Assembly (NCBI GenBank): GCA_965644315.1
Contig: CBFFRQ010000080.1
Location: 186,001-250,000, forward strand
DNA length: 64,000 bases
Direction: 5' to 3'
DNA from: Caecitellus pseudoparvulus
Lineage: Eukaryota > Protista > Bigyra: Bicosoecida
Below, in pieces: positions 9,901 through 30,275 of the stretch (its first letter is position 1; every line of letters begins with the position of its first letter). The notes beneath the pieces are model-generated. The model had not been told where the DNA came from. It saw only the letters and a list, made by a program, of their open reading frames with translations, and searched no databases. The translations under genes and the position numbers were made by a program.

Positions 9901-12900
9901 AGGGCCTGCGCACGATCCCGTCGAAGCGCCAGCCCTTGCGCACTGACTGCCGACAGCGCCTGCTGGGTCTCGCTGCGCGTCTGGGCCGGCGAGGCATTGG
10001 CAGTGATGTGGCAAGCGTTGTGCGCCTGTTCCAACAAGGCTCCGGCAAGGGCACGGGGGATGAAGGTGGGCATGGTGATGTGGTTTTGCACCACGCGGCA
10101 AGTGCGGCTGCAGTGGCCATCTTCACGCACGCTGCAAGTGCTGAAGTCCCCCTCCACTCGCACCTGCTCTCACGCCTCCTCCCAGCCTTGGCACTGAGCA
10201 TGACTGGCTCAGGAGAAGGCGAAGGCGGTTCAGCGGATGACATGGCCCCCCCATCAAAGGCACACAGGCCTCTTTGGGAGCTCCTCACAGGCATGCGCTT
10301 TGGGGAGGGGGGTGTGTGGGGGCAAGCAGCTCTTGGGAGCATGCTAGCTCTGGCTAAGTGCACACCCCCCCTGAGCATTCGCACTGCATCTGTGTACTTG
10401 CCTGTAGAAATCGACGCCACGGCGCGGCCTTCACTGGAAGCGTTGTGTGCGGGGGAATCAGCAAGCAGCGCCGTCGTGGCTGCAATTGAGCGGCAGAGTG
10501 CCCCGCGCCCAGCGGACGCCGCCAGCTGCCGCACGACGCAGCGCTTGAGGGGCACGCTCAGTGCCGCCTTGCCTGCTGCAGGATCGGCAATCGACTCCCT
10601 ATCCCCCCCTCATGTCCTGTACATCTCAGCCGTGCTGCACTTAGAGTGCTTGCGCGCTGCAGCTTCGGGGTCAGCTTCGCACGCCTTCACCTACCTTCAC
10701 AACCCTGCATTAGCTCCGCTATCTGCAAGCGACACACCACACGCGGAGTCAGCTGGAGAGCGTGCATTCGCGGCTTCTGAACTCGCCGCTGGCGGAGGTG
10801 CCATTGGTCCTGACGCGAGCAAAGCGGCCACCTTGGGGCACTTGCGATCTTGCTTGGCGGCTGCGGCCGATGCTGCGCTGACAGTGGCTCTGCGGGCGGC
10901 CCACTCAGGTAAAATTGACGCGAAGGGGCCTGCAGTGGACATGGCTCAGTTTCTCATTGCATCTGCGGGGCACCGACAGTCCACTGTGCGAAAGCAAGCG
11001 TCCCAGGCACTATCACGAGTGACGACAGCCGTGCCGCAGCTGCTGTGGAACTCGCGCGTCCTGGAGACTCTCATGAATGCCACTGAAGCGTTGGCGGCGC
11101 GAGCAGTGCAAGGTATGCAGCCATTGCCACCTGCCGCGTCCAGGGCGGCGCCGCCGTCAGCTGCGACGACGGTGCACGATATGAGCAGCGGAGTGGCCGT
11201 GTCAGCCGGCCCAGGTGCTGGCGACGGCGTGTTGGCGTCCCCGACAGCGTTCGTTGGGCAAGGGCAACGACTTGCCATTCCTGCGGCCCCTCTCCAGGGG
11301 CAAGCAGCTCAGAGCAGCCCTGCGGGTTTGGAGGAAGTTGGCCCGTTGGTGCTGCCTGGCTGCAGGCATCACCTCGAGTGCCCGACTTCGGGCCAGGCGC
11401 TCGCGGTTGTGGCAGTGGAGGTTGCAGAGTTGACTGCCCAGTGGCTGGCTGCAGCCATTGGACATGGCTCTGGGCCCCGTGTCGTGGACTTGCTCAGCTC
11501 TCAGTTGGCGCGTTTCTCTGGCATCATGACCGCCGTGTCAAGCCTGCACTCGCCTCACCCATCCTCAGCCGGCGCAGGCTCCCCAGCATCTGCGCACACC
11601 CTCGCATATCCACCCCCCGGCGGCCTTCTCACAGCGCTCGCGGTCGCAGCACCCACTGCTGCAGCGTCTGGGCAGGCCCTCGTCTGCCCACCAACAGGGA
11701 CCTCGGGCTTGCCGGCAACCAGCGGAGTGGCTGCGGCAGCCCAGGCTGTCGTGGCGGCGCTGGGTGGAGCTGCAGGTGCGCAGGGGGATGACTCGCTGGG
11801 AGCAGCTGCGACATCGTCTGCTTGGAGTACGGCGCTAGTTGCAGCAGTGCGCTCCGACGCGCTGGCTCTGCCGGGTGCCCACCGCCCAACTCAGTTGCCC
11901 ACTGGCGGGACTGTGACGCGTCCTGCTCTAGCAGCTCTCTCAGCCCTCCTTGCCCCCTCTGCCCCGCCCGACTCAACGCACCCCTTGGCCATGGTGCCTG
12001 GCTTACTGCCGTTGGGATCTGGCCCTCCAACGGACTTTTCGTCCCCTTCAGGAGGAGCCCCCACTGTCAGCTTGCTAGCAGGTGGCTCTGGTGCCGAGAC
12101 GCTTGCCCAGTTGCAGCGGCGGTCCTATTTCTTGGGTCTCGTACAAGGCATGGCAGACCACCACGAGCGACTGCGTGCCAAGGCGGTGAGGTCCTCAGCG
12201 AAGCAATTTGCCGCACGCCTGGCTGCAGGTGCATCTCACGCCCATGCAGACTCGCCCAACCTTGGGCCTGCGCACCTCGCCATCGAGGAAGAACTGGTGG
12301 CGCAAGGAGATGCCCTGCTCACCACTGCAGCCCGCAGGTGGGCAGCTGAATCCGCAGGCCTGGCGCTGCGCGCAACATTGGAAGCTTCTGAAGCAGGGAG
12401 TGATCCTGCCGCTGCTCCCCAGCCCCGGGAGCTGGCGCGGCTTGTCAGCAGCAGGTGGGCACGCCGAGTGCGAGCCGCAGCATCCAAGCGGCCCAGTGCC
12501 GCACCACCTTCCGACGACAGCGCCTCGCGGGATGCCGATGCCCACGAGGCAGCTGAGATAGAGCGGGAGGGCGTCGCCGACTCAAGTCCCGGGCCAGCAG
12601 CGGTGCTTCGCCTGCTCCCCGCCGTCGTGCGCCTGGCGGTGGCTGGCTGGCGGTACGCAGCCAGGGCGCGCCAGCGCATGGCAAAGAACTTCGACGGGCT
12701 GGTTACGAAGCAAGTGAACATGTGCGCTGCGTACTTGGTGTGGCACCACCTAGCCTGGCAAGCTGAACACCCAGACGCCAAAGGCGACCAGGATCCACAG
12801 ACTGATGCCACCGCAGCCGCTGCTGCGTTGGCCCCCCCCAGCGCTGCTTCCACAGCCTTTGGAGTGGCGGGTCGCCTGGCGGGGGCGTCGGGGACTTCGC

Positions 12901-15900
12901 CGAGTGCCCTGGACTCCGCCGAAGCGTATCAGCCTCCTCCTGTCATCATTGTATACCTTGTTTGGCTGCCAGTCAGAGCGCACTCATCTGGAGTGATGGA
13001 GGCCGCCGTGGCTGCATGGGAGTGGCTGCTTGCGGCTGTGCCGCAAGCCCGTGTGCAGTTGCTCGCCGAGGTCTTGGCAGCTTGGCGGTGGTCGGTTGCT
13101 CAGGGTTGGGGGCTGTTCTCAGGCAAGCAGTGGCAGTTCGCCCTGTCTGTGGACCCAGCTACAGGGGAGGCACAGTCTGGTGCGGCGGCCAGCGGAGGCC
13201 ACCCAGGCCCGGAGCTGTACGCGCCCCTGCCACAGGGTCTCGCAGGCGGGCGCTTTTCAGAAGCTGCGGCCCACCAGCACAACTCTGGTGTGGCCTCTAC
13301 TCCGCTACCGGCAGACATGGTGAGTGTGGAGCCGCACCGCGTCTGGTTGGGCTTTTGGGCAAGGGTCTGGGGTACTGCGTTGGCGGGGGGCCACGTGGGG
13401 CAGAGCACGCTCATCGCACAGGCTGTTTCAGCAGCCTTGGCATCACCCCAGCGCCTGTGTACCCACCCTGCTGCCCTCGGCACCCGCCTGCGTCTCGTGC
13501 ACCTTGCGCTGACGGTTCTCCAGGCGATGCATCATCCACGGTATGCCACAGCGGCCCCCAAGCTGCGCACCGCCCCAGGACTGGCAGGGCTCACGGCTGG
13601 CCTCGCTGATGCTCACAGCCAGGTTGCCGACGCGGACATTTCGCTTGTCGCGGCTGACCGTGACCTGGCGCACGGCGTGTCTGGCGGCTGGTGGGAGCCC
13701 AGAGGGGACTTGGGCGGTTCCTCCGGCATCGCTCGAGGCGACTCAGGGGTCGCCCCCCCTGCTCACGGCGGCGCGGGGCGCGTGGCTCCCCTCAGCCTGA
13801 GGTCGGTTGGTGTTCCATCACAGTCCGGTGAAGCGTCCAGCACCCTTCTGCAACCCTCGCTCACCTTCTCCGTGCCCACAACGCAAGACGCAAGGGCGGC
13901 CGCTTTGTCTCGCAGCCTCTCCGGTGCTCGTGGCAGTGCCTCCATGCCACGACTCGGTGGTGTGGCAGCATGGAATGGACCACTTGCTGGCGTGGATGCA
14001 GCGCTCGCGGCATATGGGGCTCGGCACATCGAGGAGGCAAGAGAGGGGGGGGCCTCGCCTCGGCGCAGGGCCGCCCCCCGCTTCGCCTTTGCCTTGCATG
14101 ACACGACACCAGGGGCAGACGGTGGGCTTGGAAATGCCCCGTCCGTGCCTCCCCCCAGCGCATATGGCTCGGCAGCCACCGCTGCCGATGCTGATGCCGA
14201 AAGCGCACAGCCTTCTTGGACCTCCTTGGGCGTGGGATCCTTGGGGCTCTTCCGTTCCAGAATTCTCGCGGCAGTGCTGGAGTGGTTCAAGAGTCCTCCC
14301 TCATGGTATGAGGCTGTGACGTCCCAGCACCGCCTGCGCGCAGACTGGCCGTACCTCGTCTCCACCATGCAGCTGCTATCGGCCGACCGCGCCTTTTGGT
14401 ACTCCTCAGCTGTGCCCAATCGCCGCACCGTAGAGGCAGCAGCGCCAGCGGCTGCTGCCGCTGGTTTGGCAGCAGCAGGGCTTCATGGTGACGCCGTGGC
14501 ACTCATGACAGGCCGACCAGCTGGAACGTCAGGGGGGGGCACGGTTGGGTCCGGTCCAGGCTCACGGAACTACCCGTCCATGGCGGGTGCCTTGTCCAAG
14601 TGGGGCAGCCAGACCGCAACTGGCAGCCCTACGCACTGCACGGAGCCGACGCGGAGCTTGCTGCCGCTGCTTCGCCCTCACAGCTCGTTGAGGCTCCCTT
14701 CCCAGCCACCTTCGGAAGGGGCGACCTCACCCTCCCCGTGGGTCACTGCTGCTCGGCACGCGTTTCCAAGCACCAGCTCCATCGGCTCCGAAGCGCTGGG
14801 CGGCGAGCATGTCTCCATCATTGCTGCTACTCGTCGAGGAAGTGGGCTGGGTGATCTCGGACTCGGGCAAGCACCTGGCGTTTCTCTTGGCCACCAGCTG
14901 CAAGGTGGCATGCGCTCATCATACGCTGGCCTTGGGCAGGGCACGGCCGAGGCAGGCAGCGTGCTGAGCGATGGTGCAGCCTCCGGGGACGGGTTCGCCT
15001 TCACTGGCGTTGATGACACCGGCGCTGGCGCGGCTGTGGGCCCAGATGCGCTCACGTCCCTGGCACTTGGCCTCGCAGCTTCAGCGAACGCTGCACCAGA
15101 TGGCCGGGAGTACACAACCCTGTACGCAGCCGCCCAGCTTGCCTACACACGCCACTTGAGCGTTGCCTGCCAAACCCTCCAGGCAGGCGGCCGAGCAGCC
15201 GCTGGCTCAGGGTTGCCCGTGGAGGAAGGTGCGGGGGGCATGTCGACTTCCACTGCGAAGCGTGGCAGCAGCCTGCTTAAGCACTGCCGGGCTTTGCTGG
15301 AGGCACACCCCATCGCTGACCTCGCCCACACACGCCTTCGTGCCCCATCAGGCGGGGTTTCCGTCGCGTCAGGGGACAGCGCCGAGACTGGAAGTGTAGT
15401 GCTCACCGGAGCGTGGGGGGTGCGGGCTGGTCTGTCTCGTCAGGCGCCGTCCAGCCTGCCTCCTGATGCCTTGGCACGCGATGCCCAATACCAGGGCCAA
15501 GAGGGGGGTGGGCTTGGCAGTATCCCTGACGCGTCCAGCTCGGAGGCTTTCCCCGGCCAAACTGCTCTATCCGCTGTCGCTGGACAAGTGGCTGTTGCTT
15601 TGCTGCTGCTGGCCAACGAAGCCGACAGGCAAGTGGCATGGCACAACCCCCTTTCATTGCCAGCCCGCCGGTTGCCCAACGAAAGCATGGTGTCTTTGCA
15701 TGTTTATGCGCGTTCCCAAGGTCTGGACGGGAGCTCACGAAGTGCCTCTGACAGCGCGCTGCGTGGCGTGGACATGGGGGGGGGTCCGTCGCACCTGTCT
15801 GCAGGCGTGCCTGGGCAGCCCAGCACCCCTTTCGGAGTGATGGGCGGCGCAGTGAAGCACGCAACGTACATCGGTGGAGGTGCAGATGCGGCACAGTCGG

Positions 15901-18900
15901 TGAGCCCAGCGGCCTCACACCGTGGGTCCTTGCCAGGTGATGCATGGCACCCTGAAGCGGCAGCGAACAAGTGTGCATCGAGCGTCGGGCGCAGTGTACC
16001 AGCATTGCAAGGTACCGCAATGTCTTATGGACTCCAGGGCAGCACGTGGCGAGCGCACGTCTTGGCGGCATGGAATGTGGATCCAGCTGCAGCAGTGGCC
16101 CTAGGCACACACTTCCCTGCCGTCCCGGCTGTTGCCACGACGCTTCGCGAGGTTGTCCAGGCATCCCCAACTTCTGTGCTCAGCTGCCCAGCCGCAGTGC
16201 AGTACCTCGTGACTTGGGAGACTGTGGAGCAGTGCGCGCCTTGCCTGTCATGGCTCAGTTCTTGGGCGGTGGCTGCGCCTCCCCTTGCGCTGCGCCTGCT
16301 GTCGCGCGTGGCCCCGGAAGGCTCCTTGCAGCGGCCACTTGCATCCCACCCTGCAGTCATGGCGTATGTTGTTCGCAGCTTGCGCCACCAGGCCCCCAGT
16401 ACCATTGTGTTTTATTTGCCTCAGCTGGTGCAAGCCCTCCGGCACGATGGTGGTGGTTTGCTGGCAGACTTCTTGCTGGGAGTCTCCCAGGTTTCAATGT
16501 TAGTTGCGCACCAACTCATGTGGTCATTGTCCACTGAGAGCAAGCAGGAGGAGGGCGGGGAGGGTGACGCGACGCACGGTTTTATGGGTGAGCTGCCCGG
16601 ACAAGACACTCTGCCTCAGCGTGCCAGTGCCCTGTTTGAGCGGGTGCAGGCTTCCTTCCCCCCCCTCGCCGAGGCAATGTTCCGAACCCAGTACGATTTC
16701 TGGGATGCCATCACGGACATTTCTGGTCGCCTCAAGCGCGAAGTGCCATCCAAGTCCGACCGCAGCGCCAAAATCAAGAGTTTCATCAGTCAGCTCTCGG
16801 CTCGTGCCCGTGCTGATGTGCACGAGTACGTGGCTAAGCTCGCAGACACGGCGAAGCGCAGCCCACCGACTGCGGGTGCCGTCCCCGAGCGCTTTGTTCG
16901 TTTGCGCGGTGACGCTAAGCTCGCTGGTGCTGCTGGGACACTGCATGTTGGAGTGAGCGACATCCTCTCCCGCGAGTATGCTGCTCGTCGTACTTTGCAG
17001 GCGGCTGACGCCGTGTCCGGCGCTTCAAGTGAAGCTGCTGTGGATGAGGCACCAGCGCTGGATGGTGCACCTGGGTCGCCCGCTCCGCCAGTCTCCGACT
17101 TAGGGGCTGCCGCCGTCCCGTCAGGCAGGGCGCAGGACATTGTTCGGAGTGAACTTGCGGCTGTGTTGCGCGACAGCGTCTTGTACCTGCCAACAAATCC
17201 GGACTTCAGGCTGATCACGGTGAGGGAGGATTCTGGCCGCGCCATGCAGTCAGCTGCAAAGTGCCCATTCATGCTTTCGTTCAACGTCACGCCTTTCCAT
17301 GGACCAGACGCTGCTTTCCAGAAGCAGCTTCAGGCACTCGAGGAGCCACCCAGCTCGTCCTCCTCCGAGCCCATGCCTGGCTCTACAAGCTCCCCTCGGC
17401 GCGGGGGCAAGCCAGGGGTGTGGAGTCGCACCAAGCAACAGCTGGTGCAGCGCTACCGCCGGCTCCGGGGCCGCCGCAGGGTATCTCTACCTTCAGAAAG
17501 CGCCGAGGAGCCTACGGAAGACAGTGACGAAGAGGTGATCATGTTTCTGGCACAGGAAGAAGGTGAGGAGCAGGATGACATGGTGCTTGTGGTGCCAGAG
17601 GACTTCAGCGAGCAAGTTGGGGACGGCATCGTTATCCCAGCGTCCCACACTCCGGCAAAGAAGGCAGGGCTGCGCTGGAACCTGCAACGCATCAAGCGCA
17701 CGTCAGACCACACCCGGGCAGTGCTCGCGGTGAAGTCTGCAGAGCTGTCATCGTCTTTCGCCCGCAACAAGCTGTCTCTTCAGCGCGCGCTGCGGCGAGG
17801 TGCGGCTGACGTGGCATCTCGCGTTCGTTCTGTGATGGGTGGCGCCAGTGGCGAAGCAGCTGCCCAGGCAGGCCCAGCTGAGGGCGAGTCATTCCTGCAC
17901 ATGCCTTCTCCGACAATCGACGCCGAGGAAGCGGCCGCATTGGAAGGCGAAACGATGGAGGGAGGTGTGGACTTGTCGGCTTTGGAAGATGCGCGGGAAG
18001 AGTCCGAGGAGACCCGGCCTGACGACGTCGACGACTTTGACTTGTCTTCGCTCTCGTCATTCTCTGCATCAGTGGCCTCCGCAGACGAGGAAGCCAGAGA
18101 GCCACAGCACACTTTGGAGCCAGAGCAAAAAGCTGAGGCTCCCAGCGCCTCTGTCTCCTCGGCAGATGGAGTGAATTCTGTCTCGTCAGGCGCGGCAGCC
18201 TCCGGGGAACCTGGTGGCCCCAGCTCAGCTCCCACAAAGACGAGTGACAGCGGCCGCTCCATCAAGCAGCGAGTCGCCGCTGCTTTGAGTTCAGCGCGCA
18301 AGTCAACGAAGCGCATTCGGATCAAGCGGTTCAGGCTCCGGCGCCGGCGCAAGGCACCGCCAGCTCCACAAGCACCGACCCGAGGGGCACTTCAACACCC
18401 CAGCCTCCCCGGCACAGCTCGTGCCATGGCCACGCGTTCAAAAGCCATTATCTTTAAGGTGTACGACGACATTCGCCAGGATGCCTTGGCGCTGCAGCTG
18501 ATTGGGATGCTGAAGGCATCCTTCGATACCACTGCGACAGGCTTGACCACCTTCCCGTACCGCGTGGTCCCTTCTCGTGTCGGGTCTGGGAAGGATGCGG
18601 GGGGGCTTCTGGAAGTAGTGCCGAATGCGCGGTCCATGGATGATATTGGCAAAAGCGGCAACCCGTCGTTGTACCACTACTTCGTCAACAAGTTTGGTCG
18701 GCCAGGTACGCCAGCATTTGATGCAGCGCAGCGCAACTTTGCCCGCTCTTCCGCATCGTACGCTGTGGCGTGCATGCTGTTGTGGATCAAGGATCGCCAC
18801 AACGGCAACATCCTTGTGAATGGGGATGGTCACCTCATCCACATTGACTTTGGCTTCCTGCTGGGCATCTCGCCTGGTGGGAATTTGGGCTGGGAGACTG

Positions 18901-19247
18901 CTGCATTCAAGTGGACCCAGGAGATGATGGACATCTTGGGTGGAGAAGGCTCGGAGCCGTACCAGTACTTCATGCAGCTGACTGCGAGGGCGATGTTGCT
19001 GGCCCATCAGCTGGCCGAGCCCTTGTCAACCTTAATCGGCGGTATGGCTGACTCTGGGCTGGACTGTTTTAAGTTCGACTATACCCTGCAGTTCTTGCGG
19101 CAGCGGCAGCGGTGGTCCGACACCCCCTTGGAGGTGGTGGACTTCATGCTGGACCGCATCCGCGACGCGGCGAATAACCCGAGCACCTGGTCGTACGACG
19201 GTATTCAGAAGGCACAGAACAACATTCACTCGCAGACATGGCAGTAG
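6969..19247 (+). CDS. PI4KA: Phosphatidylinositol 4-kinase type III alpha (Stt4-like), giant single ORF of 4092 aa
   Basis: PIK helical domain (IVFYLPQLVQALRHD..AHQLMW) and kinase motifs MQSAAKCPF, IFKVYDDIRQD, YAVACMLLWIKDRHNGNIL, IHIDFGFLLGISPGGNLGWETAAFK, plus C-terminal YDGIQKAQNNI typical of PI4KIII-alpha. Confidence 0.92.
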   Translation: MSRQGVAGLVRGVAAAAAASSSSPLAVLQHLLAIAPSPTAEAPGGETVHVRLSSTQREAVCAVLEYFLSTYGRNAAKLIPTLSAWLGALPHLSPHRDNQDYSARLSSGVLEAMRSIRMATKPLSEAFVSVLERFSVTRGVLDGLDHLAGRHRDAGFSVSPRGLAPLTCLQGLLHALACFDKGRLPFSATQLLRIKAVLLFFARRLEGMTTASGSGAVAQPTADAGHATPAGLALPSDAETQSMSQPSASALRAALIASILHTLAATCTNSDFAPGTAEAAGAASSSALLSRSASTDTLWVRSPQASNEDSAASGTASPHPGVEAVESITPTEPTVLSDREPQPLSSSPEGTSVRPPPVPSPPLFPRDRLLSSDAIHTMSAWGGAVPGLSELGALAKLHATPETWGGGDSPSSPSHVGHSLGVLAVALAERHAASLHAQVRLGAVRLLTKAALLLPPMAARVHALLLEDLTVTATHPEADVGLLLGLSTALVQLVPFYPTSAALVEAGIAEDFDAAAGILSSLAAAAASRPLQSALCDMPVHPERLRSTLTVFGSLLTPDAGAFAVPPDGSKPATGPVSAFKSRPAIGSVGRRRGRMGRAFKARRTTSWSSGSSARRLDGPVSPALGPSTPAFAFEGASILGTGETIGPGGVPTMSGHASTSSGQTKAFDTLAAGTAPPVLVPKHPVREALLSCMCAAAGLEVTGQGKAAAGPVLGTTVATLSAAVSLAAIAKSTLSKRRGLAHASRSTVRQDIEKGSQEGEAAAISLDTMQQLLRQARNMMSGARDKGALGPKRVTRTATASHGTGVQGKGKKTESAESQTLAALQAGCGAWASAFAAAAAAVEVVGALMRSLDCKAATRQAGERLLALMTSECDSCADDPYFCRLATLCRPAAPQSSSQVASSPQAAAMQAAVYAACRRWMQQLLATLVDAALLSYRVYAPVAAALVARFDSPPGNDPHRLSPCVRDIPAALAQLAEGLRTIPSKRQPLRTDCRQRLLGLAARLGRRGIGSDVASVVRLFQQGSGKGTGDEGGHGDVVLHHAASAAAVAIFTHAASAEVPLHSHLLSRLLPALALSMTGSGEGEGGSADDMAPPSKAHRPLWELLTGMRFGEGGVWGQAALGSMLALAKCTPPLSIRTASVYLPVEIDATARPSLEALCAGESASSAVVAAIERQSAPRPADAASCRTTQRLRGTLSAALPAAGSAIDSLSPPHVLYISAVLHLECLRAAASGSASHAFTYLHNPALAPLSASDTPHAESAGERAFAASELAAGGGAIGPDASKAATLGHLRSCLAAAADAALTVALRAAHSGKIDAKGPAVDMAQFLIASAGHRQSTVRKQASQALSRVTTAVPQLLWNSRVLETLMNATEALAARAVQGMQPLPPAASRAAPPSAATTVHDMSSGVAVSAGPGAGDGVLASPTAFVGQGQRLAIPAAPLQGQAAQSSPAGLEEVGPLVLPGCRHHLECPTSGQALAVVAVEVAELTAQWLAAAIGHGSGPRVVDLLSSQLARFSGIMTAVSSLHSPHPSSAGAGSPASAHTLAYPPPGGLLTALAVAAPTAAASGQALVCPPTGTSGLPATSGVAAAAQAVVAALGGAAGAQGDDSLGAAATSSAWSTALVAAVRSDALALPGAHRPTQLPTGGTVTRPALAALSALLAPSAPPDSTHPLAMVPGLLPLGSGPPTDFSSPSGGAPTVSLLAGGSGAETLAQLQRRSYFLGLVQGMADHHERLRAKAVRSSAKQFAARLAAGASHAHADSPNLGPAHLAIEEELVAQGDALLTTAARRWAAESAGLALRATLEASEAGSDPAAAPQPRELARLVSSRWARRVRAAASKRPSAAPPSDDSASRDADAHEAAEIEREGVADSSPGPAAVLRLLPAVVRLAVAGWRYAARARQRMAKNFDGLVTKQVNMCAAYLVWHHLAWQAEHPDAKGDQDPQTDATAAAAALAPPSAASTAFGVAGRLAGASGTSPSALDSAEAYQPPPVIIVYLVWLPVRAHSSGVMEAAVAAWEWLLAAVPQARVQLLAEVLAAWRWSVAQGWGLFSGKQWQFALSVDPATGEAQSGAAASGGHPGPELYAPLPQGLAGGRFSEAAAHQHNSGVASTPLPADMVSVEPHRVWLGFWARVWGTALAGGHVGQSTLIAQAVSAALASPQRLCTHPAALGTRLRLVHLALTVLQAMHHPRYATAAPKLRTAPGLAGLTAGLADAHSQVADADISLVAADRDLAHGVSGGWWEPRGDLGGSSGIARGDSGVAPPAHGGAGRVAPLSLRSVGVPSQSGEASSTLLQPSLTFSVPTTQDARAAALSRSLSGARGSASMPRLGGVAAWNGPLAGVDAALAAYGARHIEEAREGGASPRRRAAPRFAFALHDTTPGADGGLGNAPSVPPPSAYGSAATAADADAESAQPSWTSLGVGSLGLFRSRILAAVLEWFKSPPSWYEAVTSQHRLRADWPYLVSTMQLLSADRAFWYSSAVPNRRTVEAAAPAAAAAGLAAAGLHGDAVALMTGRPAGTSGGGTVGSGPGSRNYPSMAGALSKWGSQTATGSPTHCTEPTRSLLPLLRPHSSLRLPSQPPSEGATSPSPWVTAARHAFPSTSSIGSEALGGEHVSIIAATRRGSGLGDLGLGQAPGVSLGHQLQGGMRSSYAGLGQGTAEAGSVLSDGAASGDGFAFTGVDDTGAGAAVGPDALTSLALGLAASANAAPDGREYTTLYAAAQLAYTRHLSVACQTLQAGGRAAAGSGLPVEEGAGGMSTSTAKRGSSLLKHCRALLEAHPIADLAHTRLRAPSGGVSVASGDSAETGSVVLTGAWGVRAGLSRQAPSSLPPDALARDAQYQGQEGGGLGSIPDASSSEAFPGQTALSAVAGQVAVALLLLANEADRQVAWHNPLSLPARRLPNESMVSLHVYARSQGLDGSSRSASDSALRGVDMGGGPSHLSAGVPGQPSTPFGVMGGAVKHATYIGGGADAAQSVSPAASHRGSLPGDAWHPEAAANKCASSVGRSVPALQGTAMSYGLQGSTWRAHVLAAWNVDPAAAVALGTHFPAVPAVATTLREVVQASPTSVLSCPAAVQYLVTWETVEQCAPCLSWLSSWAVAAPPLALRLLSRVAPEGSLQRPLASHPAVMAYVVRSLRHQAPSTIVFYLPQLVQALRHDGGGLLADFLLGVSQVSMLVAHQLMWSLSTESKQEEGGEGDATHGFMGELPGQDTLPQRASALFERVQASFPPLAEAMFRTQYDFWDAITDISGRLKREVPSKSDRSAKIKSFISQLSARARADVHEYVAKLADTAKRSPPTAGAVPERFVRLRGDAKLAGAAGTLHVGVSDILSREYAARRTLQAADAVSGASSEAAVDEAPALDGAPGSPAPPVSDLGAAAVPSGRAQDIVRSELAAVLRDSVLYLPTNPDFRLITVREDSGRAMQSAAKCPFMLSFNVTPFHGPDAAFQKQLQALEEPPSSSSSEPMPGSTSSPRRGGKPGVWSRTKQQLVQRYRRLRGRRRVSLPSESAEEPTEDSDEEVIMFLAQEEGEEQDDMVLVVPEDFSEQVGDGIVIPASHTPAKKAGLRWNLQRIKRTSDHTRAVLAVKSAELSSSFARNKLSLQRALRRGAADVASRVRSVMGGASGEAAAQAGPAEGESFLHMPSPTIDAEEAAALEGETMEGGVDLSALEDAREESEETRPDDVDDFDLSSLSSFSASVASADEEAREPQHTLEPEQKAEAPSASVSSADGVNSVSSGAAASGEPGGPSSAPTKTSDSGRSIKQRVAAALSSARKSTKRIRIKRFRLRRRRKAPPAPQAPTRGALQHPSLPGTARAMATRSKAIIFKVYDDIRQDALALQLIGMLKASFDTTATGLTTFPYRVVPSRVGSGKDAGGLLEVVPNARSMDDIGKSGNPSLYHYFVNKFGRPGTPAFDAAQRNFARSSASYAVACMLLWIKDRHNGNILVNGDGHLIHIDFGFLLGISPGGNLGWETAAFKWTQEMMDILGGEGSEPYQYFMQLTARAMLLAHQLAEPLSTLIGGMADSGLDCFKFDYTLQFLRQRQRWSDTPLEVVDFMLDRIRDAANNPSTWSYDGIQKAQNNIHSQTWQ

Positions 19248-20941: not shown

Positions 20942-23015
20942 ATGGCAGCTGCAGCAGGCGGAGGCACCGTCGAGTACGGCACTCGGGCAGGCATCTTGCC
21001 CTTGCAGCCGCAGACCAAGCGCGGCGAGCCAGCGAAGCTGAACGCATCGCCAGATGGCACCAAAGTTATCTACTGCAACACCAACACTGTGATCGTGCGC
21101 GACATCGACGACGCGTCGAAGGCTTTCGTGTACGGCGAGCATGCGGCAAATGTGACGGGTGCGTGGCGGGGGCTGTGTACAACGTGGGCTCGAGTTTCCG
21201 TGCTCGGCCTGGACGCCCTGGTCAGCTGCAGCCGCCAACGCCATGTTTTCTCACCCCCCACAGTTGCTAAGTTTTCGCCCAATGGCAATTGGGTCGCGTC
21301 AGGAGGTGCGTCAGCGTACTGCTTGGCTGGGGCTAGGCGTGTTGAGGTGTTGGGCAAGTTCCGCACGCCGCTTGCACCCGCGCATTGCAGATGAGCACGG
21401 CAAGGTGCGTGTGTGGTCCTGGACCAGCGAATCTGCAAGTCTGAAGAATGAGGCCATGGTGTTGGGCGGGCGTGTGGAGGACCTGGACTGGGACGGCGAA
21501 GGCAAGCGCATCCTGGTTGTGGGTGGCGGCAGCGTCACAGCTCGTGTCATCATGTGGGACACTGGGTCCCAGCTGGGGACGCTGATGAAGCACGACAAGA
21601 CTGCCCTCACCGGTGCCATGAAGCCTGTGCGCCCCTATGCTGCTGCGTACGGTGGAGCAGACTTCGCTTCTGGCGTTACCTTCTGCAAAGGCCCACCCTT
21701 CAAGTACGACCACGCGGTGAAGGAGCACACGAACTTCGTGAACTGCCTGCGGTATGCGCCTGATGGCTCTGCATTGGTTTCTGTGTCCTCTGACAAGTCA
21801 GTACTTCTGTATGACGGCGCTGCTGGCACGCTGAGTAAGACCTTGAAGGGGCACAAGTCCGCCGTGTACGCCGCGTCATGGGCGCCAGACTCAGCTGCTT
21901 TCGTCACTGCGTCCTCTGACAAGACGCTGAAGACATGGAGTGCTGCCGATGGCACGTGCACCAACACGATTACCATCGGCAGCACAGTCGCCGACCAGCA
22001 GCTGGGCGTTGCATGGGCCGGCGCTGACCGTGTTGTGTCGGTGTCACTGAAGGGTGACCTGAACATCGTCGGCACGGCAGGGGAAGCTGATGTGAAGACC
22101 ATCACAGGGCACGTCGCCCCTGCCACTTGCCTAGCCTACGATGCCAGCAGCCACAGCATCGTGTCGGGTGACCTTGACGGACGCGTTGTGCTGTGGACAC
22201 CCCAGGACGACGCACACACCGCCTACGTTGGGAGCGTCGCGGGCGGGGACGGACACACTGGCAAGGTCAGCTTTGCTGTGGCGAGCAGCGGCAAGTTTGC
22301 AACCGTGGCCTTTGACGACACCCTGCGTGTTGGCGACTTTGCCTCAGGTTCCTTTACGTCTGCGGTGCCGCTGGAGGAGCAAGCCCGTGCCCTGTCTACC
22401 TCTGCAGCTGCACCAGACTTCTTCCTGGTGGCAACCTCCAAGAAGGTGTCTGTCTTTTCCGCCAGTGCTGAGGTGGCCAGCGTGGACGCTGCCTGGGGCC
22501 CCACGTGTGTGGACGTGGCGGCTGTGGCTGGCGCTGATGGCGTGTTGGTGGCCGTCGGCGGCGAGGACAAAAAGGTGCACTTCTTCCACCTGGACGCTGC
22601 CTCGGGGGCCCTCACCGAAGCTGGCACCAACGCCACCGAGTTGCGCGCTGCGGTGCACCGCGTGGCCATCGCCCCCGATGCCAGTGTCGTCGCAGCCGCC
22701 GACACGGTGAAGGAGATCAAGCTGCTGGAGGCGTCTGGGGAGTTCAAGAACATCGTCTCTGGCCGGTGGACGAAGCACAGCACTAAGCCTGTGGCCCTGG
22801 CGTGGAACTCCACAGGCACAGTGCTGGCCAGTGTCGCAGCCGACAGGCGCATGGCCTTCTGGAGCCCATCGAAGAAGACCGGGGCACTGGAGGCGCGTGA
22901 CCTCGCGCACTTCCAGCCGTACTTGGGCATGGCCTGGGCCGGCTCTCACGATGCTGTCTGGACTGTGGGCTCTGACGGCAACATCATCCGTGTGGACGCG
23001 CCATCTCAAGCCTAG
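20942..23015 (+). CDS. WDR1: Actin-interacting protein 1 (WD40-repeat, AIP1/WDR1), 2 introns near the 5' end
   Basis: PQTKRG..VIYCN, VYGEHAANVT/VAKFSPNGNWVASG/DEHGKVRVW, DLDWDGEGKRI, KPVRPY, GPPFKY..HTNFVNCLRYAPDG. These are diagnostic AIP1 segments, followed by many WD repeats. Confidence 0.93.
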
Positions 23016-24710: not shown

Positions 24711-24839
24711 AGCCTGTGTCTTCGATAGTGTCTCAATGCAAGCTAGGGTTGTACGTGGTGCCACCATGAGAAGACGTACATTGCCCGGTGAGGCGGAGTC
24801 CACGGTATGGACAGTGCGGTGGAAGAGACAGCGGCCAAA

Positions 24840-27800
24840 CTAGCCATGCACAACAGAATGCACTGCGTGCATGAGCTGTGTGCGGGTTTCAGACAGAGAC
24901 TCCTCAATCAGCTCCTTGAAGCGGTCGGCAGCCTCAGTGTCAGTCTTGCCGAGCAACAACGTCATCTTCAGCCAGTCCAAGTCCTCCTCCGCCTGCAGCT
25001 CCGGGATGCCGCACGAGATCATGAGGAAGAAGAGAGTGATGAGCAGATTGCTCTTCTTGCGCAGGATGTTGTACGCGCGCGTGCAGTAGGCGAGGAAACG
25101 CCCATACGCGTCCGACTCCTTGCCACCCATTGCCGCAACCATACTGGGCGTCAGGACGAAGGGAGCCTTCTCACGCTTGAAGCCCATCTTGGACTTGAAG
25201 TTGCCCAGGAAGTGCCCGAAGTCGATGTGGAAGAATTTGCCGTCGCGGGTGCACATCAAGTTGTCATTGTGTCGGTCGCCCAGACCCAGGATGTACGTGG
25301 CTACACAGTACCCAGCTGCAGAGCGCGCAAACATCTCCTCCACGTCCTCCATCTTGCCGACGTTGCAGTCTTGTGACTCCAGCCACAGCCGGATGTCCTT
25401 GTCGTTGTACATGGCGTTGTACCCCGTCTTGAGCTTGGCCCACAGCTTGGAGCTGCCGTCCGTGGATGTGCCATCTTTGGTGATGCCCGCCAGCGTGTTG
25501 GAGTTGGTGACTACTTCCACCATGCCCACTTCATCGCCAGTGGAGATGACACGGTAAGGGGACATGTTCAAGTCCAAGCCCTCTGCCTTCCACAGCTTGT
25601 CCATGATGCCGAGAATCTGCAGGGTGAGCTGGTCCTGCCGCAGGTCATCCCCAGCCTTGAACAGCACCTTGTGCGTCTCTCCATCGCCAAAGTCCATGTA
25701 ATCGGGGGGCGGCGTTTCTCCCACTCCGCGAGTGAAGGTCAGCCACAGCGGCAGCTTCTTGGAGGTCATCACGCGGCACTTGTCCACGACGATCTTGTCT
25801 GCAACCATGTACGGGGAGATGGGCAGCTGGAAGTTCTCAGGGAACACGATGCGGGGAAGCTCCTCCCGCAGTGTGCGCATCATGGCCTTCTTGTCGTCAG
25901 CAGCCTTGACGTGCTCGGCGGTCTCTTCGAGCTTCGCCATGACGAACATCTGGTGCCCCAGCACGGTTCGGTGTGCACCAGCATTGCGCAGGTAGTTCTC
26001 GATCAGCACACCGTACCGCGATGCCACCTCGGGAATGTGCATCTCTGCCTTCAAGTACCAGAACAGAACGTGCCCGATCAGTCGCGGGTTGCGCAGAGCA
26101 CGGCGTAGCAGGAAGCGGGCCAGCGCAGAGTCCAGGAACGACTCGAACTTGAGCACTTGTGTCAGCTGCAGCATGTACTGCCGAAGCTCCTCATCATCCA
26201 TGCGCTCCAGGCACTGGACAGCGTACGCGCGCACCTTCGGGTCTGGGAAGTTCACGTCCAGCAGCTGGAGGGCGTCCAGCGGCTCAGGCGCCCGCCACTT
26301 GTCCATGAGCAGGTACGCCTCTTCCACACCCATGCAGTCGTCCCAACGCACACTCTGCAGGAACTTCGGCAAGGCCTCGGGGTACCCCAGCAGGTGGTGC
26401 CGGCACTTCCAAACCAGCAGCTTCTCCTCGGGAGTCATGCGGTACAGGGGCTCCGATGCGAACAGTGTCTGCAGCTTGGGCTTGTTGTGCCGGAACTCAG
26501 CATCAGTGGCACGCATGGAGACATACGTGTCCGTGCGTCCTTTGACACTGGCCCAGTCTGCCCCGACGCCTGCCCCCGCCTTGGGCTTGGCTTGTGCCGA
26601 CGTGTGGTCCGGGCCGGCAGCCAGCGCGCCTGGCACCTTCACGACGTTGTTCTCGAAGCGGTGGAATTCCACCTTAAGCTCACCAGTGAAGTGGGGGTCC
26701 CCGTACTTGTTGCTCAGGGACGTCGTCATGCCAGCCTTCTCCGGGGTGGTGTCGCCGCTCCACATGCGCAAGTCCAACTTGCCTGTGCGCAGGGCATTAT
26801 CGTACTTGAAGGCGCTGCATCCTGCCCAGCCTGCGGTTGTGCCATCCTTGTACGTAACCTTGAAGACGACGCGGGTTGCAGTGGGCAGGTTGCAGAAGCG
26901 GATGCAGGCAGGGAGCCACTGCCCCCACATGGCTGACACCACTGGCCGCGCAACGCCATCTTCAGACGGTGCGTCAGCCTCTGGCACCTTGCACACCAGA
27001 GGTGCAGGCTCAGAGGTCACTTCCGGCGCGAGCAACGTCCCTCCATGCACCAGCATCAGGTGCACGGTGGCTGTCGTGTCGATGGGCTTGGGCCACTTGG
27101 ACTTCTTGCCACGCTTCTTCACCCACGAATCAGGCGGATCCAGGTTGCCACCTCCCATGACGCGGATGCGGAAGAAATTGTTCTCCGTGTGCAGCGGCGT
27201 CATCTCGGCAGTGCCGAAGATGACGTTCAGCTCACCCTTCACATGGGTCAAGCCCAAGGCGAAGGTATCCGCCACCCCAGCCACCACCTGCACATCTCGC
27301 TCCGAGAAGGGGATGGCAGGGCCGCCTGCCGCAGCGGTAACCGGCTCATCTTCATCGCCCTCCTCGTCGCCTTCAGCCATGGTGCCCAGTGCAGGGGCCT
27401 TGGCAGCGGAAGCGGCACCCTTGCTGGTCCAGGTGCCCATCATGGACAGGCGTTTCTTCTTCTTGCTCGTCCCAGGTGCGATGCCGGCGGCAGTTGCTGG
27501 GGCAGCGGGCGTGGTGGCAATGGGTGCAGCCTCCTCCGTGCGGTGCAAGATCTGCAGCACCGCCTGCACCTGTCCCGTGGGCGAGATGACCGGCGCCACG
27601 ATCATGCTGGAGCCGTTCGTAGTGGAGGTGCTGAAGGACATGACGTCGGAGTCGAGGCCAGCACCCTTCCGGCGCCGCACGCCTGCCAGCTGGTCGGCGG
27701 CCTTGGCGTGCATGTCAGCCGCGAGCTCATTGAACATGCGGTCAATCTCCACCTGCCGCATGCCCCAGCCCATGCTCACTTGGGCATCCACATCGGAGGG

Positions 27801-29726
27801 GTCTGTCTCGGGATCACCAGCCTGGGGGTTCCGGAAACGCACGTCAGTTGCCGTGTCATCCACCACGATGACCTTCTTGGTGCGCAGGCAGGCAGCCAGG
27901 ATGCCCCCTTCCCGCAGTGGCAGGGAGTCCACATCCTCCACGCCCGACCCCACCGCCAGCAGTTCCTGCGCCTCAGCGTCGTGGATGGCCACACGCACGC
28001 ACGCGGCAGAGACGAGGGTGGCTAGGGACTTCGTGACGCGATCTATGACATCCTCCAGGGACAGCTCGGGAGCGTACATGGACATGGCATCCACCAGCGC
28101 TCGCTCAGTGGGCATGCGCGCGTCGGACTCCACTGGGTCGTTGACGTCCACTCCGGACGACCGCGCACTGTCCACGAGCAGGCCAAAGAGCTGGCAGTGG
28201 GAGGCCAGGGCGAGGTACTCCGCAGAGGAGTTGGCGAAGTGTTGTGTCGCGTAAGACATGAGGGCAGGGCCACAGCTGTCCTGCAGCATGGAGAAGGAGG
28301 ATTTGGACAGCTTCAGACACACGACGTTGTCCACTGCCACGACGGAGGCCAGTTGCGGCTCCCCCGTGAGCAGTGCCCGCTCGCCAAAGAAGAAGCCCCT
28401 GCTCAGCTCAGCGACGACCGGGCCGAGGTCGCGCCCGCCTGGCGCCTCTGACACGCGCAAGTCAATGCCTGGCCGGTCCAGGGCCAGAGAGAACGGCGAG
28501 CCTGACAGCATGCCTGGCGGGGCCTTCACGGCAGCCTCGCCGTCGCCGGCCGGCTTGGGCATGGCCTTGTGCACGGCCACCTTGCCGGTGATGATGATGT
28601 AGAAGGCGTCTGGCGTGCCGCCCTGCTCCATGATGATGCTGCCGCTGGAGAAGTCCTCCTTCACGATGGACGTCGCCAGGCGAGTGAAGTCCGACTCGGA
28701 GAAGTGCATGAACATGGGGATGGACTTGAGCAGGGACAGCTGCCCTGCCATGCTGGTGTCTGTGCTGCTGTCCAGGCGCCCCAGGCGCATGCTGCGGCCC
28801 ATGGACACGCTGGCGAAGCGTGAGCGGGGCGATGCAGGCAGGGAGTCGTCGTCATCCCCCGCGCCCGCTGCGGCGGTTGCCTCCTCTGGCGCTGCGAAGG
28901 ACACCGCCGGCGGGCGAGAGTCAGGGCCGGACGCAGCAGAGGCAGCAGCTGCCCTGGCGGCTTCCAACTGAGTCGTCAGCTCCTTGATGCGGGTCTTCAG
29001 TTCACTGCGCAACAAGCAGACGGGAAGGGCGGTGGTGCGGTTTGAGTCCAGGTGCGGAAAATGCAGGGGTGTGCGTTTGCACTTCAAGGCTATGCACGCA
29101 CGCGTTCTCCCGCTCCACAGCCTTCAAGCGCTCCTTCGTAGATGCAAGCTGCGAGTTCGTGGACTGTACCTGGTCCCTCAGCTCCCACAGAGCTCGACTG
29201 TCGTCATGCGAAGTGGAGGCAACCTGGGATACGCCGGTGGCGTACCCCTCCTCCGCCGTCGCAGCGGCGTACTTGGCAGCCAACTCATGAGGGTTGGACC
29301 ACGTGGAGATGTCCAGCCTGGCATTGTACCAGTATGAGTCCCCTTCCTCGTCTGGGACCTCCTCCCAATCAGCCAGCTCTTCAGGCTTGACCACTAGCTC
29401 AGGTTCACCGTCGGCCAGCACCTCCTCGGCAACCTCCTCTCCGTCATGCTCGATTTCGATTTCATCTTCACGCAGCTGTGAAGTACCAGGCCAAGAGTCA
29501 CGTGAGCAGCTGCAGGCGCCGGGCGCGGCATGCCCGCAGCAAAGCCTGGGGGTGCTCGTGGCGGGCTGCCAGCGGCACTGCAGCAAGCCTCGTGTGCACA
29601 GCAACTTACAATGACGCCTTCCTCAGGGCGCTCCCACGAAGTCTCTAACGTCAGGTTGTGGTAGTAGTACACCTCCCCTGTCTCAGTGGTGGTCTCAATC
29701 CACACGCCTTCGTCTGTGGCGGCCAT
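24840..29726 (-). CDS. Class-I-like phosphoinositide 3-kinase with N-terminal WW-WW, coiled coil, cNMP-binding and GAF domains; 2 introns
   Basis: Exon 1 MAATDEGVWIETTTETGEVYYYHNLTLETSWERP (WW). Exon 2 DWEEVPDEEGDSYWYNARLDISTWSNP (WW) plus coiled coil. Exon 3: cNMP (LLKSIPMF..IIMEQGGTPDAFYIIITG..FFGERALLTGEPQLASV), GAF, PI3K-C2 (IRFCNLPTATRV), PIK (YMLQLTQVLKFE) and kinase (VMTSKKLPLWL, FKAGDDLRQD, YCVATYILGLGDRHNDN, HIDFGHFLGNFK). Confidence 0.92.
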
Positions 29727-30275
29727 GTTGAGCCTGGCGGGGTGTGTCTGCAGCTCCCTCCTGAGAACGTGCTGCGCGGCGCCCGCAAGCTCTCAATCGT
29801 AACCAGCCTCCCCACGTCAGGCAAGCAAGCAGCGCGGCCTTTCACCCCAACGGCCACTCTCCCAGGACCTGCCACAGCACAGGGGCTTGGGCTGGCCTGG
29901 GTCGCTGCGGCCGGCGGAGGTAACGCAAGTTTCGCGGTGAGAGCCAGCCCACTGCAAGCGGACGTGTGCAGCGCGTCCAGCCAGAGGGGGACCGTGGGGG
30001 TGGGAAGGGTTTGCGTTCCTTGAATTGAAGGGGAGAGGTTTGGTGTTGCTCGGCTTGGCCCCGTCTGCGAAGCTGCTTGAAGGGGCCGTCCACCCGCGCC
30101 CGCCAGTGGCGTGGCGGCGATCTGGCACATTCCATTCCCACGTCACAGCAGCAGGCGAGTGCTGTGCACCAGGCACAGTCCCCCCTCAGGCCCCATTCAG
30201 CCCGTCTGACTGCCGTGGCCGCACCCACCTGCACGCTGCCTTACTGCCATCCCTGCCTTCCCGCACACTGCCACC

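Follow-up and report, generated by a model that had tools for sequence, protein, structure and literature searches.

A class I-type phosphoinositide 3-kinase with a putative CNB-GAF sensor module in Caecitellus pseudoparvulus and other stramenopiles

Within a 64,000-nucleotide stretch of the Caecitellus pseudoparvulus genome (hereafter the window, meaning the whole stretch that was analysed; contig CBFFRQ010000080.1, positions 186,001 to 250,000), we studied a single minus-strand gene of three exons, 29726..24840, whose product has the domain order WW-WW-coiled coil-CNB-helical linker-GAF-C2-helical-kinase. The best explanation, which we hold as a whole with moderate confidence, is that the gene encodes a phosphoinositide 3-kinase (PI3K) of class I type (class I/II-like) that is predicted to be catalytically competent, and that it is a member of a subfamily, spread across the stramenopiles, whose proteins have WW-WW-coiled coil-CNB-helical linker-GAF in place of the adaptor-binding domain (ABD) and the Ras-binding domain (RBD). 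The window copy itself appears to be a derived member of this subfamily and is probably not a canonical cyclic-nucleotide sensor. Sequences of the family were already public with automatic domain labels; what appears to be new is the sensor-type regulatory module on a class I-type PI3K.

In the model organisms examined to date, class I PI3Ks are activated through Ras, G-beta-gamma and phosphotyrosine adaptors. A stramenopile lineage would have swapped these inputs for domains that normally read cAMP or cGMP and, if this is true, the family forms a one-polypeptide link between two second-messenger systems of which we found no description. It also offers a series of natural experiments, with intact sensors, half-degenerate ones (the window gene and its paralogue) and apparently fully decayed ones (oomycetes), which could reveal how autoinhibition of a PI3K works in the absence of p85 and Ras. 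As a research tool, too, a compact PI3K gated by a ligand would be of interest.

Gene structure and transcription

Metatranscriptome contigs of four runs were mapped over positions 24800-29800. Exactly two RNA joints were found in this interval, 29475->29610 and 29004->29102, each of them in both run X17 and run X10, and both have GT..AG borders in the direction of the gene (CT..AC on the plus strand). Because RNA contigs skip both introns in two runs, we regard both introns as real. An earlier note on this DNA, made from its letters only, had described one spliced gene with this domain order; the RNA joints agree with it, as do the Pfam and fold matches given below, and the two introns for which it had proposed a check by RNA are spliced exactly as modelled. 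A 1,088-nt RNA contig spans exons 1-2-3 and continues upstream. Further downstream in the gene, a 3,502-nt X10 contig is colinear with the DNA from 28695 to 25194 and an X17 contig over 28205-28892, and X17 contigs bridge the remaining gaps. Since the colinear contig covers 25194-28695, the sensor-kinase stretch holds no further intron, and transcripts that would split the sensor from the kinase, an outcome which the earlier note had also considered, are not the case, as this contig spans both parts. The PI3K gene is transcribed in seawater samples of several studies. Run X10 carried the flag 'RNA? (probably DNA)'; its contigs have both introns removed, and the run therefore does hold RNA from this organism.

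The ATG at 29726 is the first start codon past an in-frame stop, and the end of exon 1 is set by the RNA joint 29475->29610. The residues LREDEIEI at the start of exon 2 are kept in a relative from a metagenome contig (L001). Exon 3 consists of a 4.2-kb stop-free frame, with a whole open reading frame of 24840..29087 on the minus strand (1415 aa).

The exons were searched one by one, and the only joined sequence that we used was the deposited protein P0005 (CAE7223989.1). It shares the intron 2 junction with our model and has a slightly different intron 1 acceptor. The deposited model also contains an extra intron that deletes the activation loop, for which neither the RNA contigs nor homology gave support. 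P0005 is near-identical to the window gene, falling in the same 90% cluster, and was deposited as 'pikB [Symbiodinium sp. KB8]'; its source contig, which is GC-rich and intron-poor, has probably entered the dinoflagellate assembly by contamination or mislabelling.

Catalytic core and enzyme class

The top match of the window protein among PDB sequences was p110alpha (E 6.3e-132 over ~680 residues of C2-helical-kinase), and the best 60 PDB sequence matches were all class I enzymes. The motifs VLFKAGDDLRQD, GDRHNDN and DFG, as well as the activation loop NFKSKMGFKREKAPFVLT, line up with their p110alpha counterparts, and within the loop the KxK...KREK basic boxes are aligned to those of p110alpha. 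The claim of the earlier note that the catalytic motifs are intact is thus borne out by the presence of VLFKAGDDLRQD, DRHNDN and DFG alike. A protein-atlas search returned just a generic PI3K cluster, with a score of 0.82.

With regard to the reaction, the enzyme probably makes a 3-phosphoinositide at a membrane, and its product would be PI(3,4,5)P3 (PIP3) if the basic activation loop works as in class I enzymes. The class I-like basic boxes of NFKSKMGFKREKAPFVLT are at most suggestive of a conversion of PI(4,5)P2 to PIP3; taken together, the basic loop and the presence of a separate Vps34-like gene in the genome would favour PI(4,5)P2 as the substrate.

Architecture and predicted structure of the N-terminal module

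The first WW domain scored above the Pfam cut-off, and the second, lower-scoring when taken alone, shows the W...W..P signature; their combined score in P0005 was 40.7 bits. With two Trp residues ~22 positions from each other, an aromatic core and a Pro at the C-terminal end, these segments fall in the WW family. Residues 100-193 of P0005 gave weak matches to coiled-coil families, and a heptad-rich segment begins in exon 2. We infer that the WW domains may have a role in localising the enzyme.

Neither RBD (PF00794) nor ABD (PF02192) had a Pfam match in the window protein. PI3K_rbd had no match anywhere in the genome, which is a weak test as it was run without a positive control. The N-terminus, in which Pfam detected no adaptor-binding domain (adaptor proteins were not searched for in the genome), is filled by WW-coiled coil-CNB-GAF. 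To view the module in three dimensions, we used an AlphaFold2 model of residues 100-860 (761 residues) based on a 39-sequence family alignment, with a mean pLDDT of 74 and a pTM of 0.65. In this model the last helix of the GAF domain is followed after only four residues by the first strand of C2, which leaves no space for a Ras-binding domain. The earlier claim that RBD and ABD are lacking therefore holds by the Pfam null result and by a model in which the GAF domain runs straight into C2.

A Foldseek search with the 761-residue model was swamped by PI3K C2-domain matches, and an exhaustive VIA-align structural search separated three folds. The CNB fold (model residues 13-189) matched 5v4s, a bacterial CNG channel, with Z 16.4 (2.6 A over 132 residues), 3of1 with Z 15.7, and PKA-R and PKG with Z ~15.5-15.7. 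For the GAF fold (model residues 221-532), Z was 16.1 to PDE2A (3ibj_B) and 16.0 to the PDE6 GAF (3jab). The third fold (model residues 529-715) was that of the p110alpha C2 domain (Table 1). Both the CNB and the GAF domain hold long inserts that were modelled with low confidence.

Ligand-site residues of the window copy

The window CNB domain has the CNB fold and a Pfam score well above cut-off, and its best PDB sequence matches are PKG and PKA-R (E 1.5e-14 for PKG). Its phosphate-binding cassette does not carry the conserved pair of Glu and Arg, as the Arg is replaced by Gln. No variant was found among reads at this Gln codon (28353-28355), and other assemblies agree with it; the sister protein P0002 has Asn at the same site. 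The rest of the cassette is well kept (FGERALLTG.P..AS), the ribose-contacting Glu included. Gln at this Arg site lowers cyclic-nucleotide affinity in CNB domains that have been studied. The GAF domain likewise has the GAF fold and lacks the NK..F..DE signature, and the GAF part of the window protein had no PDB sequence match at E<=1. Identity to P0002 is 80% in the N-terminal part of the GAF domain, 60-62% in CNB and 75% in C2. As the sensor cores are conserved relative to P0002, the sensor module is being kept and is not decaying.

A stramenopile-wide family

A word search with the C2-kinase part of the window protein gave 2,336 relatives. Among the best 120 of these, ~50 carry PF00027, mostly together with GAF families, and 13 carry WW too. 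The protein of Hondaea fermentalgiana that is labelled 'Phosphatidylinositol 3-kinase 3' (P0047) has the order WW-CNB-GAF-C2-PIK-kinase, and further named members come from Thraustochytrium (MMETSP0198 transcript), Cafeteria roenbergensis, Triparma strigata and Paraphysomonas (MMETSP1103 transcript; taxid 36769). Complete transcript open reading frames with the same architecture include P0012 (EukProt TSA), P0039 (MMETSP0198) and P0094 (MMETSP1103), and two such frames are present in the EukProt set GECG01. P0002, the closest relative, shares 65% of its residues with the window protein in the sensor and 80% in the catalytic part. It lies on the 48.7-kb metagenome contig L001 with the same upstream WW exons, a convergent WD40 neighbour and a nearby PI4K-alpha gene. 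Gene order is kept between the window and this contig (L001 12494-20176) over the PI3K, the convergent WD40 (21159-23015 +) and PI4K-alpha (6969-19247 +).

A maximum-likelihood tree was made from the helical and kinase regions (122 rows, quick search, no class II sequences), with the Vps34-like gene of the genome as outgroup. All CNB- or GAF-bearing PI3Ks of the CNB-GAF type came together as a single clade (75 rows, SH-aLRT 100) that branches from among RBD-bearing class I-like proteins. The nearest neighbour of the window gene is P0002 (SH-aLRT 100), and the pair then joins P0011, P0012 and P0013 (97). The CNB-GAF clade also contains the oomycete PI3Ks from Phytophthora and Pythium (P0119, P0104, P0076 and others), and the oomycete PI3Ks of the tree have no N-terminal domain that Pfam detects. 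In the Phytophthora infestans PI3K, the N-terminus can still be aligned to the profile of CNB-linker-GAF-C2 (hhalign probability 99.2%, E 8e-20), and its binding cassette is destroyed. The oomycete enzymes would seem to be members of the CNB-GAF family that have decayed. In three metagenome PI3Ks (P0060, P0087 and P0118) a CNB domain occurs together with a Ras-binding domain. These proteins group in a clade of their own, apart from the CNB-GAF clade, and may represent an independent CNB-PI3K fusion.

Over 39 aligned family members, the CNB cassette follows FGE[RK]ALL....PR[AT]A[ST], with the Glu present in 38/39 and the Arg in 34/39. The GAF signature NK..F..DE is found with N in 34/39, K in 25/39, F in 38/39, D in 37/39 and E in 20/39. 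When the sensor of a canonical member was compared with PDB sequences, the cAMP-binding GAF of CyaB2 matched at E 6e-27 and PKG/PKA-R at ~5e-23 to 2e-21, followed by the GAF domains of PDE2, PDE5 and PDE10 (1e-20 to 5e-17). Because most members keep canonical CNB and GAF motifs, direct control by cyclic nucleotides is a reasonable hypothesis for the family.

The earlier note knew of no characterised PI3K with this architecture, and had also allowed that the architecture might already be widespread and described. It is indeed widespread, forming a stramenopile-wide clade with dozens of sequences, but no paper describing it was found in the searchable literature, namely the full text of 8.1 million open papers and bioRxiv. 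Papers on the phylogenomics of PI3Ks and phosphoinositide kinases (PMC4617754, PMC3024228 and PMC3823935) do not mention GAF or cyclic-nucleotide domains. Public entries carry automatic labels such as 'CRP-like cAMP-binding protein' or 'Phosphatidylinositol 3-kinase 3'.

Genome context

Apart from TOR, PIKKs and PI4Ks, the genome (30.6 Mb in 215 contigs) has four genes of the PI3K type. These are the window gene, a CNB-GAF-PI3K paralogue on contig C44, a giant PH-bearing PI3K and the Vps34-like gene. In the C44 paralogue the Lys, DRHSDN and DFG are intact and the GAF domain carries a canonical NK..F..DE motif; its CNB cassette is degenerate, and its kinase domain contains an insert of ~150-190 aa. 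Its position in a different subclade, with Cafeteria and GECG01 proteins, points to an old duplication as the likely origin of the two genes. The genome also encodes at least 7 class III nucleotidyl cyclases, several of them with two domains, and gave several PTEN_C2 matches.

Table 1. Positions of features of the PI3K gene in the window, and of its paralogue elsewhere in the genome
Feature	Position	Strand	Remarks
Exon 1	29610..29726	-	Start codon 29726 and WW domain 1 (~29625-29702); Pfam WW 31.7 bits
Intron 1	29476..29609	-	134 nt, GTAAGT...CAG, phase 0; skipped in X17 and X10 contigs
Exon 2	29102..29475	-	Acidic linker, WW domain 2 (~29290-29370), start of coiled coil; Pfam WW 22.1 bits
Intron 2	29005..29101	-	97 nt, GTGCGT...GCAG, phase 2; skipped in X17 and X10 contigs
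Exon 3	24840..29004	-	End of coiled coil, CNB, helical linker, GAF, C2, helical (PIK), kinase; stop codon 24840-24842
CNB domain	28230..28760	-	~35-aa disordered insert in the beta-barrel; Pfam cNMP_binding 52.8 bits (cut-off 27.5)
Phosphate-binding cassette FGERALLTGEPQLAS	Glu kept 28380-28382; Arg to Gln 28353-28355	-	
GAF domain	27201..28136	-	Two long low-confidence inserts; Pfam GAF_2 27.8 bits, just below the 28.6 cut-off
GAF motif	HR 27540-27545; FSERDV from 27306-27308	-	HR...F..DV replaces NK..F..DE
PI3K-type C2	26652..27200	-	Directly after GAF; Pfam PI3K_C2 31.8 bits; Z 15.7 to p110alpha C2 2enq, Z 18.9 to PI3Kdelta
Helical (PIK) domain	25968..26486	-	Pfam PI3Ka 200 bits; aligned to p110alpha
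PI3/PI4-kinase catalytic domain	24993..25670	-	Pfam PI3_PI4_kinase 210 bits; Lys in VLFKAGDDLRQD, GDRHNDN, DFG, activation loop HFLGNFKSKMGFKREKAPFVLT
Catalytic-Lys motif VLFKAGDDLRQD	25632-25664	-	
DRHNDN	25260-25277	-	
DFG and activation loop	25149-25223	-	
CNB-GAF-C2-PIK-kinase paralogue	G000:C44:83851-88752 (L019:1352-6253)	-	1634-aa open frame

Proposed mode of action and alternatives

In the ancestor of the family, cAMP or cGMP would have been bound by the CNB domain, by the phosphodiesterase-type GAF domain, or by both. The protein would be a dimer through its coiled coil and GAF domain, and binding would lift a contact that inhibits its C2-helical-kinase core, by analogy with the GAF tandems that control phosphodiesterases and cyclases. 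We consider the chances of such direct cyclic-nucleotide gating in the canonical members of the family to be about evenly balanced. For the window copy, the loss of the Arg and of the NK/DE residues from otherwise well conserved sensor cores leads us to a scaffold reading: most likely, going by these residues, the module would be kept for autoinhibition and dimerisation. Release of the enzyme would then take another route: the WW domains might draw it to partners with proline motifs, the disordered inserts might be modified, or a weak ligand, or one of another kind, might act. The broader picture of a stramenopile PI3K class that is gated by cyclic nucleotides through a CNB-GAF module in place of RBD and ABD, a class that would range over thraustochytrids, bicosoecids and chrysophytes and survive as decayed copies in oomycetes, with the window gene as a lineage-specific derivative re-tuned to another input, we put forward tentatively, as its odds seem to us slightly short of even.

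The scheme could be mistaken at its base if the fusion were an annotation or assembly artefact and the WW, sensor and kinase parts were separate genes. Prokaryote-style gene callers do cut off the WW exons, and P0001 and P0002 begin within exon 3. Spliced RNA contigs nevertheless link exons 1-2-3, the 3.5-kb contig runs from sensor to kinase within a single stop-free open frame, and the same architecture recurs in dozens of contigs and, in other species, in complete transcript frames, which makes an artefact exceedingly improbable; as far as contigs can show, it is already refuted. A more serious alternative, though one that we still think unlikely, concerns the product: the enzyme might not produce PIP3 and might make PI3P or PI(3,4)P2 for membrane traffic, like class II/III enzymes. 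Philippon et al. 2015 (PMC4617754) leave the non-opisthokont homologues in a single 'class I/II' group without further division, which would fit this alternative. The activation loop, whose first basic box (NFKSK) is weaker than the KKKK of p110alpha, would fit it too, as would neighbour genes of a trafficking type (epsin ENTH and PI4K-alpha). It is opposed by the exclusively class I enzymes among the best 60 PDB matches, by the presence of both the KREK and the KxK box, and by a genome that holds a separate Vps34-like gene as well as PTEN-like genes.

The remaining alternatives concern the input to the window protein. The earlier note had proposed a relay from a cyclic nucleotide or another small ligand to PIP3. 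A cyclic-nucleotide relay fits the motif consensus of the family, but the window copy has Gln for Arg and HR/DV for NK/DE. That the window protein binds cAMP or cGMP at its CNB domain, its GAF domain or both, and that this directly switches on PIP3 synthesis, is accordingly a reading to which we give a low probability. It draws on the intact cyclic-nucleotide motifs of the family consensus, the otherwise well-kept cassette with its ribose-contacting Glu, the many cyclases of the genome and the conservation of the sensor cores relative to the sister species. It has to contend with the Gln of the window cassette and the Asn of P0002 at a site that is Arg in most members, with the changes of NK to HR and DE to DV, with a GAF domain that lacks sequence matches to phosphodiesterase GAFs, and with the long inserts that break up both domains. 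GAF domains bind many metabolites, and CNB-like domains without the Arg can hold other or intrinsic ligands. A module that reads a different small ligand, making the protein a metabolite-gated PI3K, would be consistent with the intact GAF fold, whose N-terminal half is 80% conserved with P0002, and with changes at canonical sites that the window protein and P0002 share, which look like lineage-specific change rather than decay. The sequence points to no candidate ligand, however, and a purely structural module would show the same pattern, so we rank this possibility slightly below direct gating by cAMP or cGMP.

Several points weigh against the reading that we prefer, namely a class I-type PI3K with a replaced N-terminus that serves as a scaffold in the window copy. 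Class II PI3Ks are absent from the tree, and the term class I-type is based on the order of the PDB matches and on the position of the family amid proteins that bear an RBD. An activation loop is an unreliable guide to substrate specificity. Gln at the Arg site is no proof that nucleotide binding is lost, and the degenerate GAF motif is only suggestive because the NKFDE residues are structural and do not contact the ligand. Dimerisation, autoinhibition and WW-mediated recruitment are all features that we infer from analogous proteins.

Comparison with known systems

Compared with class I PI3K catalytic subunits (p110alpha/beta/delta/gamma and Dictyostelium PIK1-3), the window protein has the same C2-helical-kinase core with the Lys, DRHxxN, DFG and a basic activation loop, and it nests among RBD-bearing class I-like PI3Ks on the tree. 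It differs from these subunits in having neither ABD nor RBD and in its WW-WW-coiled coil-CNB-GAF N-terminus.

The sensor half resembles two other groups of enzymes. With the GAF-regulated phosphodiesterases (PDE2, 5, 6, 10 and 11) and CyaB2, the window protein shares the GAF fold, and the PI3K family shares the arrangement of a regulatory GAF N-terminal to the catalytic domain in what is probably a dimer. The PI3K family has one GAF domain instead of a tandem and a lipid kinase as output, and the window copy has HR/DV for NK/DE and no sequence match to phosphodiesterase GAFs. With PKA-R, PKG and Epac it shares the CNB fold (Z 15-16) and a phosphate-binding cassette and, as in PKG and Epac, the CNB domain is N-terminal to the effector domain in one chain. 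The window protein differs from these CNB-regulated enzymes in the replacement of the cassette Arg by Gln and in the ~35-aa insert in the beta-barrel. Plasmodium PKG has a degenerate CNB site, and the CNB-homology domains of KCNH channels are not known to bind nucleotide; these may be the better analogy for the window CNB domain.

The other members of the clade (Hondaea, Cafeteria, Triparma and Paraphysomonas) show the same domain order as the window protein, and labyrinthulomycete members also have the N-terminal WW. Unlike the window copy, most of them keep the canonical phosphate-binding cassette and NKFDE motif.

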